From Rebecca billardiae RCC1528 (Eukaryota > Protista > Haptophyta), in the NCBI GenBank assembly GCA_965240325.2, contig OZ251251.1, forward strand, positions 682,001 to 746,000: a stretch of 64,000 bases of DNA. The letters run 5' to 3'. A model generated the notes under the pieces. That model searched no databases, had not been told where the DNA came from, and worked only from the letters and a program-made list of their open reading frames with translations. The translations under genes and the position numbers were made by a program. Shown piece after piece: positions 46,605-54,722 of the stretch. Positions within the stretch are counted from its first letter, which is position 1; every line of letters starts with the position of its first letter.

Positions 46605-47733
46605 CACTCGCTCGCCGCCCGATCCGCGGCGGCCCGCTGATGCGCGCGTCGCAGCGCGCCTGCGCGAACACGCTCGAGGGCGCTCGCTGCGGCTGATGAC
46701 ACCCAGCAGCCGCGACGAGCGTCGAGCGACCGGATTCTTTCTCGTCCCTTCAAGCCATGGCGGGCGTGAATGCCCGTCCACCGGCGATCCAAGGCCCCAG
46801 CGCCACGGCCGGATCACCGGGGCGTGGCGTAGGCAGGTTGGTGCGGTCGTACGAGCGCATGGGCACGAGTGACAGATTCCTTTCCGACTTTTCGACCACT
46901 CTCACGTCCACGTCCACGTCCACGTCCTCGTGCGACCGGCGCGCGTGAGGCTGCGCATGGGAAGAACGGGCAGGTAGGGACCAGGATCACCCTTCTGACG
47001 GCCATGCCGACCTCTTTGGTATGCCTTGCGACGGTGCAGACCAGCCAATGTTCCGTCTGACCCAACACACCGTGTGTCTGACTATCAATGTTGACTGCGC
47101 AATAGTCGTGCGACCGCCGTCCGACACGGCTGCCATGCGAATACGTGCGCAGCGTGTGCGCGCCTATCACTCTGGTGAGGCGAGGCGATCATCGACCGAC
47201 ATGGCTAGCGAGCTGATCCGGCCTATCCACGCAGTGCTGAATATGGACGAATATAACCTGCTACTGTCAGACGGAGGGCCTGCCCTTTCTAGCAGCGCAG
47301 GCTCTCTGGCTCCATGAGTCAATTGCCAATGCCCGGCATGAGCATGTGCACCGCACCCCGCCGTACCGGCGCGTGCACAGCGCAACCCGCGTGCCCGAAC
47401 CGGAACACGGACATCTGCGGTCCTCGCCACTCGGCCTCCTGTGTCGTGCCTCATCAGGCGCTCGGATACGATCGACAGTACTGTATGGAGATAGAGTCGC
47501 AAACGCGCCGGCCCGGCCGCCCGGGGATCCGGATCGCAGACGACGTATAGTGACACGGTGCGACACATACGGACCAGGCCTACGCCATCGACACGTGCGT
47601 GCCCACGACCACGCCCGCGCGCACACGACACGTTCTTTCGCGGGCGGCGGGCGCGGGGCGGCCGCCGGCCGCCATGTTTGACATCGATCATTCTCGCAGT
47701 CCTGGTAACTCATGCATACCAGTATGGCTTATA

Positions 47734-48527
47734 TAGTCCCTCACAAGTTTAAGCCTCCCGACATTGTTCGCCATATCAGCGCAGCAAAGCAGCGGCGCGC
47801 CACCATACCAGGGGCGTACTTGGCCCACTCCACTGCCGTGCACATGAGGTGCGCCCGGACCCGATTGCTCGAGTCCTCGCAAATAGGCGTGGCTGTGCAT
47901 CCTGGGTTGACGTTTGGTACCCGGCGGCCGGCGAGCTCGACTGGCGGCGAGCAGACCTGCCTGCGTGCCGCCGGCTGTCGGCAGCCTCCGTGCGCTGAGC
48001 CGCGCGCCGCGCGGTGCGTGTGCGACGTAGCTCCGCCCACGCCACGCATGCACCCTCGCGCCGCGCCGCCAGCTTGGCGCTGCCGTCAGCCAGAGCCGAT
48101 CGAGTGCATGCCCGAGCCTGCTCCGAGAGCATCAATATGGGCTGCGTGTGGCTGCGCGTGCACTTTCGTCGCCTAATTTTGCCAGCGTCGAGTTGGCGCG
48201 TGGCACGCCCACCGTAGCAGCACGACTCCCGAATGCACAAAAGCCGGGGGTCAGCTGAATTAATGCAGCTCACACGACCGCGCTCCACGCCGAAAACCAG
48301 CCCGTAGCTGCCCGCCGGCTGGCTCGTGCATGCGCACCGACTGCCGGGCGCATCGACACCGTGGCGCACAGAGCGCGGGTGCCGCGGCCGGGTGGGTATG
48401 TACTGACGCGGCTGGGCCTGGTGCATGCGCGGGCGGATGGGCTCTGCCCGGGTCGGCGCGTAGCGGGCGTGCGGGCTGAGACAAAGTCGTGCCTGCTGCA
48501 GCCGGCAACTAAATTTGTGGGTCCCTA
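47734..48527 (+). repeat. Left 794-bp direct repeat
   Basis: TAGTCCCTCACAAG...TTTGTGGGTCCCTA recurs at offset +5623 with identical ORF translations. Confidence 0.95.
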
Positions 48528-49005
48528 AGTGAGCAGGTAGTAGAAAAGTCGGAACGAGGGCGAGGGCGACGGCGAGCGAGGCCGGCGTCGGTCCACATGG
48601 GTCGGGGATATTCCCGCCGTGCAGCGATCCCAGCGCGTCGTCCGCCTCCGGCGAGTTGGTGGGGCACAGGAGCCCACATCTTGCGCAGAGCAGCTGAGGT
48701 TAATCGGACGCTCCCGCGCGGCGGCGGGGCCGGCAGTTGGGGCCTCCACTGGGTTGGACTTGCGCCACGCCGCTTGTCATAGCTCGACGAGCTCAACCCG
48801 TGGCGCCGAGCTCGTGCCCAGCGCACATCCGCGAGGGCGTGCGGCCCCAGCGCACGCGGCGGCTGCGTCGATGGGGCGCTCGCCATGGACGGAACGAGTT
48901 CGAATAGAGGCCACACCGCTTCGTCAGCTGTAAGATCAACTTTGGGCGGCTCGGGACGTAACGTGCACTCATCTTCGGTCGTGGCCAAGCAGCCGGCGGC
49001 GGCTG

Positions 49006-50307
49006 ATGGGCCGCGCGCCGACCGCGCCCAAAGATCGGCGCGGGCGCAAAGGCGCCCACCGCGTCGGCTACGCTCCGAACAGGCGGGTATCGCGGGAGTG
49101 TATTGCTCTGGATTACAACCCGAAGGCCCTGGGCCCTGCGGAGAGGTTTCACCATGCGATCGGCGCGTGCGTGCTGTGCCTCAATGAAGGCTCTCCGTTG
49201 GCCTCAGCTTTCCAGAGGGCGGCGCGGTCGGCCGAGGTCACCGAGAAGACGATGAAGAAGTGGTTCATGGACTGGCACACGGAGGGCTGGCACATCGATG
49301 CTGACGGGAAGCCGAAGCGCGGTCCACGCCCACGCCTCAGTGCCAAGGCGCAGGCGGCGCTTACGTCCGAGCTCAGCGCCGGGCCGGCTGGTCAGAGTGT
49401 GCGGAAGGCTGCGTGCCGCGCCGTCGGTGCTGGATCGCTCGATGCGTCCGCGCTCGACGTCTCCGACGAGACGCTACGCCGCGCGGCGCGGAAGAAGATG
49501 GATTGGGAGCCGCTCAAGGTGAGGAAGCAGATCACGGCTCAGCAGGCGAAGAAGCGGGTGGCGTTCGCACGGTGGCTGCAGAGAGTCAAGGCGATGGTTG
49601 ACAGGCTGTTCTTCACCGACTCGAAGTACTTCAAGTTCGACGTCACGAACCGGAGCACGGTGATGTCGTGGACGCTGCGTGACGAGCCCAAGCGCAAGCT
49701 GAACCAGGTCCAGGCAGGTGACTGCGTGATCCATGGCTACGCCGGCGCCTGCTCTCGCGGCATCACGCCGCTCTATTTTGCCACGGGCACTCACGGCCGC
49801 ACGCATGAGAATGGTCGCGGCAAGCAGTGCCGTGGCGTGTGCTGGAAGGAGTACCTGAACGACGTGCTGCCTTTCCTGGACAAGGAGGCCCAGGCGCTCT
49901 TCGGCAACTTCATCAGACAGATGATCTTCCAGCAGGACAGTGCCTCACCCCACACGGCGCTGGCTGTGCGCCAATGGCTCGACGAGCGGTTTGGCCCCGA
50001 GGGACACCTTGGCCCCAAGTCGACCGAGGGTCAGCCGGGCCGTAGCTGGCCGCCGAACAGCGCCGACTTGTCGCTCATTGAGCATGTCTGGGCGCGCGTG
50101 GAGCAGCTTCTCAACGCATGGAAGCACAAGTGGTGCACCGACAACCCGAGCAAGCAGCGGCCAACCTTCAAGGAGTTCGAGGAGGTGGTGAAGGCTAAGT
50201 TCGAGGAGGTACGGAACGACAAGAAGTTCATCCAGGCGCTGTTCAAATCCTATCGGCGTCGGCTGCAGGACTGCGTCGAGACCAAGGGTGAGCAGCGCGT
50301 GCGCTGA
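49006..50307 (+). CDS. Tc1/mariner/IS630-superfamily DDE transposase (DD47E)
   Basis: GPRPRLS linker, VSDETLRRAA HTH, KRVAFAR, FFTDSKYF (D1), FQQDSASPH (D2), WPPNSADLSLIEHVW (E), SYRRRLQDCVETKG; uninterrupted 433 aa. Confidence 0.95.
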   Translation: MGRAPTAPKDRRGRKGAHRVGYAPNRRVSRECIALDYNPKALGPAERFHHAIGACVLCLNEGSPLASAFQRAARSAEVTEKTMKKWFMDWHTEGWHIDADGKPKRGPRPRLSAKAQAALTSELSAGPAGQSVRKAACRAVGAGSLDASALDVSDETLRRAARKKMDWEPLKVRKQITAQQAKKRVAFARWLQRVKAMVDRLFFTDSKYFKFDVTNRSTVMSWTLRDEPKRKLNQVQAGDCVIHGYAGACSRGITPLYFATGTHGRTHENGRGKQCRGVCWKEYLNDVLPFLDKEAQALFGNFIRQMIFQQDSASPHTALAVRQWLDERFGPEGHLGPKSTEGQPGRSWPPNSADLSLIEHVWARVEQLLNAWKHKWCTDNPSKQRPTFKEFEEVVKAKFEEVRNDKKFIQALFKSYRRRLQDCVETKGEQRVR

Positions 50308-50424
50308 AGAGCAGTGTCGGACAATGATGGTATAGTTTATTAGCTGCTCAGTATAGTAGATCTCGAGTCATATCATATCAGCCTATAGGCTATAGCTTAC
50401 TCTACGTCTAACGTCACGTCTCAC

Positions 50425-53344
50425 GACGGCTGCGACCAGCGGCGGCTAGCTCAGCAGAGCGGCGCGACTGAGCGATGATGTGCGCGCCGGGCGGGCACGC
50501 CGACGCGTGAGCAGTGCGCCCCGGGGCCGCTCGACGCGCGCGCGCGCGCCCGGCCGCACGGCGCCTCCTCCACGCGGCCCCATGTCCCGGCTCAGAGCGA
50601 GCAGCTGACAGCAACTGGTCTTCACGATCTGCGGCGGCGGCGAGCAGCTACGACTGCTACGGGGGCCTCAGAGCGCGGCGAGGACGAGCTAGCTGGGCGA
50701 GATCGGGGTGCGGGGCACTCGGCGCGGCCCAGGCACACCGAGCCCACGTGCCAGCGGGGCGGCGCCGCGCCGCGCGCGCGCGCGCTCGCGCGCCGACTTT
50801 TGTCGGGTCAGATCAGCCTACGGCAGCTCACGGCCTCAGCCGACGGCTGCGACCAGCGGCGGCTAGCTCAGCAGAGCGGCGCGACTGAGCGATGATGCGC
50901 GCGCCGGGCGGGCACGCCGACGCGTGAGCAGTGCGCCCCGGGGCCGCTCGACGCGCACGCGCGCGCCCGGCCGCACGGCGCCTCCTCCTCGCGGCCCCAT
51001 GTCCCGGCTCAGAGCGAGCAGCTGACAGCAGCTGGTCTTCACGATCTGCGGCGGCGGCGAGCAGCTACGACTGCTACGGGGGCCTCAGAGCGCGGCGAGG
51101 ACGAGCTAGCTGGGCGAGATCCGGGTGCGGGGTGCTCTGCGTGGCCCAGGCACACCGAGCCCACGTGCCAGCGGGGCGGCGCGGCGCCGCGCGCGCGCGC
51201 GCGCTCGCGCCGACTTTTGTCGGGTCAGATCAGCTGACGGCAGCTCACGGCCTCAGCCGACGGCTGCGACCAGCGGCGGCTAGCTCAGCAGAGCGGCGCG
51301 ACTGAGCGATGATGCGCGCGCCGGGCGGGCACGCCGACGCGTGAGCAGTGCGCCCCGGGGCCGCTCGACGCGCACGCGCGCGCCCGGCCGCACGGCGCCT
51401 CCTCCTCGCGGCCCCATGTCCCGGCTCAGAGCGAGCAGCTGACAGCAACTGGTCTTCACGATCTGCGGCGGCGGCGAGCAGCTACGACTGCTACGGGGAC
51501 CTCAGAGCGCGGCGAGGACGCGCGGGCTGGGCGCGATCGGGGTGCGGGACGCTCGGCGCGGCCCAGGCGCACCGAGCCCACGTGCCAGCGAGGTGGCGCG
51601 GCGCGCCGCGCGCGCGCGCTCGCGCGCCGACTTTTGTCGGGTCAGATCAGCTTACGGCAGCTCACGGCCTCAGCCGACGGCTGCGACCAGCGGCGGCTAG
51701 CTCAGCAGAGCGGCGCGACTGAGCGATGATGCGCGCGCCGGGCGGGCGCGCCGACACGTGAGCAGTGCGCCCGGGTGCCGCTCGACGCGCACGCGCGCGC
51801 CCGGCCGCACGGCGTCTCCTCCACGCGGCCCCATGTCCCGGCTCAGAGCGAGCAGCTGACAGCAGCTGGTCTTCACGATCTGCGGCGGCGGCGAGCAGCT
51901 ACGACTGCTACGGGGGCCTCAGAGCGCGGCGAGGACGAGCTAGCTGGGCGAGATCCGGGTGCGGGGTGCTCGGCGCGGCCCAGGCGCACCGAGCCCACGT
52001 GCCAGCGAGGTGGCGCGGCGCGCCGCGCGCGCGCGCTCGCGCGCCGACTTTTGTCGGGTCAGATCAGCTTACGGCAGCTCACGGCCTCAGCCGACGGCTG
52101 CGACCAGCGGCGGCTAGCTCAGCAGAGCGGCGCGACTGAGCAATGATGCGCGCGCCGGGCGGGCACGCCGACGCGTGAGCAGTGCGCCCCGGGGCCGCTC
52201 GACGCGCACGCGCGCGCCCGGCCGCACGGCGCCTCCTCCACGCGGCCCCATGTCCCGGCTCAGAGCGAGCAGCTGACAGCAGCTGGTCTTCACGATCTGC
52301 GGCGGCGGCGAGCAGCTACGACTGCTACGGGGGCCTCAGAGCGCGGCGAGGACGAGCTAGCTGGGCGAGATCCGGGTGCGGGGCACTCGGCGCGGCCCAG
52401 GCACACCGAGCCCACGTGCCAGCGGGGCGGCGCGGCGCCGCGCGCGCGCGCGCGCTCGCGCCGACTTTTGTCGGGTCAGATCAGCTGACGGCAGCTCACG
52501 GCCTCAGCCGACGGCTGCGACCAGCGGCGGCTAGCTCAGCAGAGCGGCGCGACTGAGCGATGATGCGCGCGCCGGGCGGGCACGCCGACGCGTGAGCAGT
52601 GCGCCCCGGGGCCGCTCGACGCGCACGCGCGCGCCCGGCCGCACGGCGCCTCCTCCTCGCGGCCCCATGTCCCGGCTCAGAGCGAGCAGCTGACAGCAGC
52701 TGGTCTTCACGATCTGCGGCGGCGGCGAGCAGCTACGACTGCTACGGGGGCCTCAGAGCGCGGCGAGGACGAGCTAGCTGGGCGAGATCGGGGTGCGGGG
52801 CACTCGGCGCGGCCCAGGCACACCGAGCCCACGTGCCAGCGGGGCGGCGCCGCGCCGCGCGCGCGCGCGCTCGCGCGCCGACTTTTGTCGGGTCAGATCA
52901 GCCTACGGCAGCTCACGGCCTCAGCCGACGGCTGCGACCAGCGGCGGCTAGCTCAGCAGAGCGGCGCGACTGAGCGATGATGCGCGCGCCGGGCGGGCGC
53001 GCCGACGCGTGAGCAGTGCGCCCCGGGGCCGCTCGACGCGCACGCGCGCGCCCGGCCGCACGGCGCCTCCTCCACGCGGCCCCATGTCCCGGCTCAGAGC
53101 GAGCAGCTGACAGCAGCTGGTCTTCACGATCTGCGGCGGCGGCGAGCAGCTACGACTGCTACGGGGGCCTCAGAGCGCGGCGAGGACGAGCTAGCTGGGC
53201 GAGATCCGGGTGCGGGGCACTCGGCGCGGCCCAGGCACACCGAGCCCACGTGCCAGCGGGGCGGCGCCGCGCCGCGCGCGCGCGCGCTCGCGCGCCGACT
53301 TTTGTCGGGTCAGATCAGCCTACGGCAGCTCACGGCCTCAGCCG
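50425..53344 (+). repeat. Tandem array of 7 x 417-bp units
   Basis: The same unit recurs at 50514, 50931, 51348, 51765, 52182, 52599 and 53016 (exact 417 period, substitutions only). Confidence 0.97.
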
Positions 53345-53356
53345 AGGCTGCTCACT

Positions 53357-54150
53357 TAGTCCCTCACAAGTTTAAGCCTCCCGACATTGTTCGCCATATC
53401 AGCGCAGCAAAGCAGCGGCGCGCCACCATACCAGGGGCGTACTTGGCCCACTCCACTGCCGTGCACATGAGGTGCGCCCGGACCCGATTGCTCGAGTCCT
53501 CGCAAATAGGCGTGGCTGTGCATCCTGGGTTGACGTTTGGTACCCGGCGGCCGGCGAGCTCGACTGGCGGCGAGCAGACCTGCCTGCGTGCCGCCGGCTG
53601 TCGGCAGCCTCCGTGCGCTGAGCCGCGCGCCGCGCGGTGCGTGTGCGACGTAGCTCCGCCCACGCCACGCATGCACCCTCGCGCCGCGCCGCCAGCTTGG
53701 CGCTGCCGTCAGCCAGAGCCGATCGAGTGCATGCCCGAGCCTGCTCCGAGAGCATCAATATGGGCTGCGTGTGGCTGCGCGTGCACTTTCGTCGCCTAAT
53801 TTTGCCAGCGTCGAGTTGGCGCGTGGCACGCCCACCGTAGCAGCACGACTCCCGAATGCACAAAAGCCGGGGGTCAGCTGAATTAATGCAGCTCACACGA
53901 CCGCGCTCCACGCCGAAAACCAGCCCGTAGCTGCCCGCCGGCTGGCTCGTGCATGCGCACCGACTGCCGGGCGCATCGACACCGTGGCGCACAGAGCGCG
54001 GGTGCCGCGGCCGGGTGGGTATGTACTGACGCGGCTGGGCCTGGTGCATGCGCGGGCGGATGGGCTCTGCCCGGGTCGGCGCGTAGCGGGCGTGCGGGCT
54101 GAGACAAAGTCGTGCCTGCTGCAGCCGGCAACTAAATTTGTGGGTCCCTA
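53357..54150 (+). repeat. Right 794-bp direct repeat
   Basis: Copy of 47734-48527. Confidence 0.95.
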
Positions 54151-54722
54151 TACTGTTGGGTTCAAACCCCCAGTTTCCAGGTCTCTCTTCGGAGAGCGTG
54201 CGATGAAGGATGGCGCGGCAACCTGCCACCGTGAGCCTTACGCACGTTAAAACAAATAAACTGTACGTACGCGCTATCAAACATTACGTACGCGCTATCA
54301 CTTATCATGAGTCGGCGGTCAGGGCGGTTCACTACACGACGATGTAAATTCCCCTGCTTTATAATAACGCGGGCTCCGGGTGATCAGACTGGCGGCCGAA
54401 GCCTCCAGCCGACGATAGTAAAGTATGCCGGTTCCTGCGGGCAGTCGCAGTGGTGCCTTCCCGCCGGCTTGATGAATACAGTTGACTCTGCATGCATCAT
54501 AACCTGCACGCACCCTCTCGGCTCATCTGGAGAATAGGAATCTGGGTAGAAAAATGGGAATGACGATAATGCGATGGGGAACAACTAGCAACAGTGTGCT
54601 CTGATGAGAGCGCCCGCGGTTCGTCACACATTCTCGTCACCGGATACCTGCGCGCGCTCTTTCGTGTTTGTTGATGTCCGGCGCAAGAGAAGGCCAGAGG
54701 CGGGCTTGGACCCCGAGCTGCC

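Follow-up and report, generated by a model that had tools for sequence, protein, structure and literature searches.

The 64-kb window analysed here, C35:682001-746000 of the 72-Mb, 41-contig and very GC-rich assembly of the haptophyte Rebecca billardiae RCC1528, contains at positions 47734-54150 what is very probably a young, multi-copy DNA transposon of the Tc1/mariner superfamily with a composite-like architecture. A pair of long terminal direct repeats (LTDRs, module A), each bounded by its own short terminal inverted repeats (TIRs), bracket an internal region (INT, module B) composed of a transposase gene and a satellite. Copies of this element in the assembly show, through their boundaries and flanks, that insertions of the whole LTDR-INT-LTDR unit, with duplication of the TA, have taken place at many TA sites and used the left end of the left A and the right end of the right A.

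Structure of the element

The left LTDR (47734-48527, plus strand) and the right LTDR (53357-54150, plus strand) are identical at 794 of 794 aligned positions, and identity drops sharply outside both limits. Each starts with TAGTCCCTCACAAGTTTA and has TAGGGACCCACAAATTTA as the reverse complement of its far end; the two match at 13 of 18 positions. Both repeats are non-coding, with no Pfam match among their scanned open reading frames (ORFs) and no Rfam match. A target-site duplication TA (no strand assigned) lies on either side, at 47732-47733 on the left and at 54151-54152 on the right. With a slash marking the element boundary, the outer flanks read ..TA/TAG.. and ..CTA/TA.., and the extra TA is missing at both inner junctions between LTDR and core. 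A preliminary description of this locus had reported the identical repeats, their imperfect inverted ends and the confinement of the extra TA to the outer ends, and alignment recovers all three features.

The core, or INT (48528-53356, plus strand; 4829 bp), comprises a 478-bp leader, the transposase gene (49006-50307, plus strand), a 116-bp AT-richer spacer and a satellite of 417-bp units. Tandem-repeat detection places the satellite at 50424-53351 on the plus strand, with 7.0 copies and 96% matches; it fills 2.9 kb of the 4.8-kb core, or 61%. The core ends carry a perfect 9-bp terminal inverted repeat, AGTGAGCAG at 48528-48536 and its reverse complement CTGCTCACT at 53348-53356 (both given on the plus strand), for which the chance expectation at fixed positions is about 4e-6. 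This inverted repeat is shorter or absent in the sister families described below. Words shared between modules A and B are limited to GC-rich low-complexity matches.

An 8-mer of the core inverted repeat, GTGAGCAG, recurs near the end of the transposase ORF (~50290, plus strand) and once per satellite unit (e.g., ~50508), always on the plus strand. It could be a binding motif or a chance recurrence.

Distribution of copies in the genome

A genome search identifies at least 28 copies of module A at 99-100% identity, mostly arranged as same-strand pairs, and 23 copies of module B, each directly after an A or another B. None of the 23 B copies lies outside LTDR brackets; they sit singly between LTDRs or in head-to-tail B-TA-B arrays within such brackets. 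The LTDR-core-LTDR build is present at 11 loci with the same outer boundaries and unrelated flanks. Seven are A-B-A monomers (C39, the window copy on C35, C10, C33, C17, C1:4.10 Mb and C1:2.42 Mb), two are LTDR-(INT)n-LTDR loci (n = 4 on C7 and n = 3 on C30), and two are multimers, namely a rearranged (A-B)2-A on C3 and a long A-B-A-B.. array at C1:2.33-2.39 Mb. The assembly further contains one A-A dimer (C1:2318313-2319898) and three full-length solo A copies (C8, C13 and C10:1.75 Mb), besides older fragments. At the other monomer loci, A-to-A spacing differs from that of the window copy by near-multiples of 417 bp, and all satellite matches listed in the genome fall within copies of the window element's family (family 1). 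Hence, the spacing differences reflect satellite copy number. Flanking TA occurs at 28 of the 29 family-1 flanks examined, ending 15/15 left flanks and starting 13/14 right flanks.

Because 11 loci combine the same outer boundaries with different flanks and TA on both sides, the composite moves as a unit, as the preliminary description had proposed when it envisaged mobilisation by the outer ends. That description had also listed what would speak against its view: a core occurring without the repeats, an arrangement unique to this locus, or an assembly duplication. The core always occurs with the repeats, the arrangement is found at 11 loci, and an assembly duplication cannot yield 11 loci with TA duplications. 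Chance nesting of two copies of a MITE (miniature inverted-repeat transposable element) beside an ordinary Tc1 element, or assembly duplication of a repeat, would be compatible with each repeat being a complete TIR-bounded unit and with the existence of single copies. Such an origin has virtually no probability in view of the 11 loci of the same build with different flanks and TA duplications, the retention of the build in families at 33-37% amino acid identity and in metagenomes, and the position of the transposase outside the TIR-bounded module throughout the clade.

The preliminary description had further suggested that recombination between the repeats could collapse the element into a solo 794-bp copy. 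Solo copies flanked by TA do exist on C8, C13 and C10 (one right flank on C10 being TG); as to their origin, recombination and transposition of a single repeat are not separable from these data.

Two of the larger loci display additional rearrangements. In the C3 dimer (L133, G000:C3:3674000-3681500), the middle LTDR breaks off after base 233, ~200 bp of other sequence follow, and the next core then begins at base 157. The large array on C1 (G000:C1:2329003-2390505; L016, L021, L132) has the same flank on both sides in opposite orientation, and its halves meet head-to-head in the satellite (L132 3283-3722). This represents a 60-kb inverted duplication or else a fold-back of the assembly.

The transposase

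The core contains a single intact ORF of 433 amino acids (49006-50307). The remaining ORFs of the element have no Pfam match, and the element thus encodes no recognisable reverse transcriptase (RT) or integrase. This agrees with the preliminary description, which had noted an intact transposase and no RT, integrase, primer-binding site (PBS) or polypurine tract (PPT). Taken by itself, the ORF gives a weak DDE_3 match in Pfam (E=0.013) and no match to a Pfam helix-turn-helix (HTH) domain. A search for homologous proteins with the single ORF returned the ORF itself only, and phmmer of the single ORF against PDB gave no match. Assignment to Tc1 required a profile of relatives together with fold comparison.

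An exhaustive HMMER search collected 401 relatives, and a family profile was built from an alignment of 42 sequences. This profile matches the catalytic domain of Sleeping Beauty SB100X (E=7e-41), as well as Mos1 and SETMAR, and the Tc3 DNA-binding domain (1u78; E=1.7e-7), as well as Pax paired domains. Residues D205, D311 and E359 align on the SB100X triad D153/D244/E279, giving a catalytic spacing of DD47E in the window transposase, compared with DD39E in the clade profile. DDE_3 is matched by 38/42 relatives and a Tc3-type HTH (HTH_Tnp_Tc3_2 or HTH_32) by 16-28/42. An AlphaFold2 (AF2) model computed on the alignment reaches a predicted local distance difference test (pLDDT) score of 85, against 41 for the single-sequence model, and Foldseek relates the former to Mos1, Sleeping Beauty and SETMAR at E values of 1e-11 to 1e-6.

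Three hallmarks of the IS630-Tc1-mariner group are therefore recognised: an RNase H-fold DDE/D domain, supported by the triad, the profile and Foldseek, a paired-like bipartite N-terminal HTH domain, supported by the family profile, and a TA target-site duplication, supported by the TA next to 28 of 29 examined flanks. A fourth hallmark, a single TIR pair around the transposase gene, is not found, as the gene lies outside both TIR-bounded modules. Judged by profile and predicted fold, the protein is a DDE transposase of the Tc1/mariner superfamily, which bears out the Tc1-type label given to it previously.

Concerted evolution of the terminal repeats

The family is young: all transposase genes are intact (23/23 genomic copies with an open frame, at least 99% identical), and its LTDRs show at most one differing position. 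Only three single-nucleotide polymorphisms (SNPs) are present in the LTDRs when the composite elements of family 1 are compared. C791A on C17 and G146A on C33 are each private and present in both LTDRs of the element, and G648A in the C1-2.42M element is unpaired, being found in one LTDR only. Module B falls into two sublineages (C39, C30, C10 and C33 versus the rest) separated by 8 SNPs and 2 insertions or deletions in 1896 bp. The LTDRs of these two sublineages show no fixed difference, whereas ~6-7 would be expected (P ~0.001-0.003). The LTDRs evolve in concert.

Two processes, a recent burst and active homogenisation, underlie the identity of the LTDRs. The preliminary description had posed recent origin and homogenisation as alternatives, and both apply. 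Donor arrays, unequal exchange, gene conversion and a one-LTDR intermediate could each contribute to the likeness of the repeats.

The last of these can be extended to a full alternative, in which the two LTDRs are remade in each cycle from a one-LTDR intermediate. Such an intermediate would take the form of a circle or concatemer of A-B, resembling the translocatable units of IS26 or phage genomes with terminal redundancy, and LTDR identity would be built in as it is for long terminal repeats (LTRs). In line with such a cycle are the two elements whose private SNPs occupy both of their LTDRs, the near identity of LTDRs in each of the three families, the (A-B)n arrays and the relatives that assemble as circular-type contigs. 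It is nonetheless unlikely, as no circle or junction read is seen in the material used (assembled sequence only), one element has an unpaired SNP (although this may have arisen after insertion), and the process is without precedent in Tc1/mariner chemistry. Moreover, arrays with unequal exchange account for the same data more simply, and the LTDR identity across B sublineages would be left unexplained.

Sister families and the clade

A protein search of the genome detects two further families. Family 2 (C11, L043; 37% amino acid identity) has LTDRs of 812 bp, identical at 811/812 positions, with TIRs matching at 19/22 positions, the sequence ..CAAGTTTAAGC in common with family 1, and TA outside. 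Its transposase gene is followed by a 415-bp satellite. Family 3 (L044 and L045, on C29 and C20; 33% amino acid identity) has LTDRs of 783 bp bounded by TA/CAGGG..CCCTG/TA on the outside and by non-TA dinucleotides on the inside; a 204-bp satellite follows its gene. No LTDR nucleotide similarity is found among the three families past the terminal ~20 bp, and no coding is conserved in LTDRs between families. The satellites of families 1 and 2 show weakly significant similarity on the same strand (z=5.3 over dinucleotide shuffles), and that of family 3 is unrelated to either.

Metagenomic and other public relatives extend the pattern. L047 has the order A-B-B-A with the same TA joints as family 1, and in L047, L060 and L065 the direct repeats have diverged. 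Five relatives (L048, L049, L051, L052 and L054) are circular-type contigs, as expected of collapsed LTDRs; a TIR scan is clear in L048, L051 and L052 and not in L049 or L054. In L051, L052, L060 and L065 and in the linear contigs L134 and L135, the module delimited by canonical CAG/TAG termini is non-coding, and the transposase is encoded outside that module. Module A measures 733-812 bp in eight families and ~1130-1143 bp in two, with unrelated sequences. A TIR motif, ..CAAAAGT.. / ..CAAGTTTAAG.., is common to A modules across families and missing from B ends.

More distant relatives are classical, with TA/CAG.. ends around the gene. In a quick maximum-likelihood tree, the 10 rows with the gene outside the TIR-bounded module and the 14 rows with the gene inside are separated by one change, on a branch with a Shimodaira-Hasegawa-like approximate likelihood ratio test (SH-aLRT) value of 96. 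Taken together, comparison of these relatives shows the LTDR-INT-LTDR build to be an inherited trait of a Tc1-like clade and not a one-off composite. This trait, the satellite, the core 9-bp inverted repeat and the resemblance to KolobokP discussed below go beyond the preliminary description.

L068 was considered as an LTDR element and rejected: its direct repeat (96% identity) overlaps the ORF, so that L068 is a tandem array, carries no information on the build and does not enter the label count. L059 (GC 0.32), in which the standard code yields no long ORF, stands outside the tree. L041 2336-5501 (G000:C11:553.3-556.5 kb) and L042 contain a 3.2-kb element with 423-bp TIRs, a 650-bp segment of which is ~85% identical to LTDR positions 105-757, with the LTDR ends missing. 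The segment may be informative about how module A arose.

Joints between modules and the status of module B

A-B and B-A joints are direct abutments. The joint of the A-A dimer has one shared TA (..GGGTCCC-TA-GTCCC..), and B-B joints also have one TA, which creates a 20-bp palindrome. Inner A ends adjoin non-TA dinucleotides in every family (AG/CT in family 1). Classical relatives end in TA/CAG.. or TA/TAGGG.., and family 3 in TA/CAGGG. Most simply, these ends can be read as a TIR starting with YAG (TAG here), the "extra TA" being the first two bases of the element.

These joints bear on whether module B is itself the mobile entity, i.e., a true autonomous Tc1-like transposon with 9-bp TIRs and a TA duplication that inserts site-specifically at the TA of A-A dimers, the dimers being responsible for spreading. 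The perfect 9-bp TIRs have TA on both sides, one unoccupied A-TA-A dimer exists, and the genealogies of A and B differ, as they would for independent modules. However, 23/23 B copies lie within A brackets, and 11 independent and perfectly site-specific insertions would be needed against a single empty dimer. Family 2 B ends have AGT..ACT only and family 3 inner joints lack TA, yet both families share the same build. Moreover, the TIR motif conserved on A is missing from B ends. An autonomous module B is accordingly quite improbable.

Proposed mechanism

Under the composite reading, the short TIRs of the A modules are most likely the binding sites of the transposase. Tc1/Tc3 chemistry produces a 2-nt stagger at cut ends, and Tc1-type excision depends on the flanking TA. 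Insertion would place TA at the outer ends only, and inner ends would adjoin B. Since excision depends on flanking TA, the outer ends would be favoured, and movement of the whole unit would prevail over that of a single A. Occasional cuts at inner ends could leave self-complementary TA overhangs on transposon ends and donor flanks. Joining of such overhangs might give an A-A joint with one TA when inner ends are cut and B is lost, or a B-TA-B joint when an internal A is excised from an array. Unequal exchange among A copies may generate arrays and solo A copies, and arrays acting as donors, gene conversion or both may maintain the likeness between an element's two A copies.

A more far-reaching version can be offered tentatively, as a possibility that we consider less probable than its negation. 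The clade would be "inside out", with the transposase gene framed on either side by a copy of the MITE that is its own substrate, and efficient cutting restricted to the TA-flanked outer ends. A cycle through arrays, dimers or circles, driven by the transposase, would maintain the likeness of the LTDRs, as a counterpart in eukaryotes of the dimer or translocatable-unit pathways of the IS26/IS30 type. A constraint of a mechanical or regulatory kind would hold the LTDR at ~0.75-0.8 kb, for example if it acted as promoter and terminator in the manner of an LTR.

Several points weigh against the composite reading and its mechanism. The right flank of the solo LTDR L131 (G000:C10:1747230-1748023; 99.4% identity), which has TA on the left and starts with TG on the right, is the sole exception to flanking TA. 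No empty site, excision footprint, circle or transcript is seen in the assembled sequence, to which the analysis was confined. A search for paralogous empty sites with the window element's own flanks returned small repeats and none across the insertion point. If a fixed unit simply transposed, A and B would not be expected to have the differing genealogies that they show, and the perfect 9-bp inverted repeat suggests that B ends may be substrates too. The element could also start at GTCCC within a TATATA target, and the data do not separate this from a YAG start. Circular-type contigs could alternatively be tandem arrays or true circles, as opposed to collapsed LTDRs. Finally, the tree is a quick search over 39 rows, some with long branches, from a small, assembly-limited sample.

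Neighbouring repeats and other genomic observations

An abundant ~110-bp repeat begins 6 bp past the element (54157-54266), with 788 candidates genome-wide in an initial search, many at 97-100% identity. It has a T-arm-like sequence, GGTTCAAACCCCCA, inside, yet ARAGORN detects no tRNA. The left flank contains pieces of two other dispersed repeat families at 47136-47225 and 47562-47666. Elsewhere, the latter often occurs as inverted pairs ~860 bp apart (e.g., C5:1135474/1136350), resembling the TIRs of a ~1-kb element. More than 45 light-harvesting-complex genes mark the genome as that of an alga. Most of these genes match over their full length with no interruption, and they often form inverted or tandem pairs.

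Comparison with known systems

The closest known analogue belongs to an unrelated superfamily: the KolobokP composite-like DNA transposons of animals, which have an LTDR-INT-LTDR structure (Kojima and Bao 2022, Mob DNA 13:24, PMC9587614). The same authors stated that no other DNA transposons bear LTDRs, and proposed, tentatively, that an encoded His-Me finger (I-PpoI-like) homing nuclease drives multimer formation (PMC9587614). No Tc1/mariner element with LTDRs was found in the literature searched. Both systems combine the LTDR-INT-LTDR build with LTDRs that have their own short TIRs, and both display the same four insertion patterns, including solo LTDRs and (LTDR-INT)n-LTDR and LTDR-(INT)n-LTDR arrays. 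INT-INT joints retain one short terminal motif in each, TATA in KolobokP and TA here. LTDR lengths are likewise clustered, at ~450 or 660 bp in KolobokP and, here, at 733-812 bp (eight modules) or ~1130-1143 bp (two). Differences lie in the superfamily and target (Kolobok with TTAA-type duplications versus Tc1/mariner with TA) and in the hosts (animals versus an alga and environmental eukaryotes). Moreover, KolobokP has a His-Me nuclease ORF downstream of the transposase, whereas the corresponding region here is a satellite with no second protein by Pfam scan; a satellite within INT is a feature of the window family. Since no second protein is found in the window element, a nuclease is not needed for the LTDR build.

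Classical Tc1/mariner elements (Tc1, Tc3, Sleeping Beauty, Mos1) share the DDE fold and motifs, the paired-like HTH (in relatives), the TA duplication and short TIRs starting with YAG. Unlike them, the present element has its gene outside the TIR-bounded module, four potential ends and long terminal direct repeats, and its catalytic motif is DD47E (DD39E in the clade profile) instead of DD34E. Bacterial composites, such as Tn9 with direct IS1 copies and IS26 translocatable units, also use two direct TIR-bounded modules that mobilise a centre, with single modules and multimers co-occurring. In bacteria, however, it is the flanking IS that supplies the transposase for a cargo in the centre, whereas the present element has non-coding flanks and a centre that encodes the enzyme; assembly is opportunistic there and a stable lineage trait here. 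LTR retrotransposons resemble the element in having long and identical terminal repeats in direct orientation, in occurring as solo repeats and in forming tandem arrays whose members have a repeat in common. They differ in that RT, integrase, PBS and PPT are lacking here and the enzyme is a DNA transposase, in ends that read TAG..CTA with TIRs and not TG..CA, and in a duplication of TA and not of 4-6 bp.

Composites with LTDRs, held in 2022 to be unique to one Kolobok lineage of animals, thus also occur in Tc1/mariner elements of algae. For annotation, such elements risk being misread as LTR elements, MITE pairs or circular contigs. The combination of a young family with the best-understood transposase superfamily makes the choice among four ends, the basis of LTDR identity and the constraint on LTDR length testable. 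The presence of the same build in two superfamilies points to a convergent and stable strategy for cut-and-paste elements, one that does not require a nuclease.

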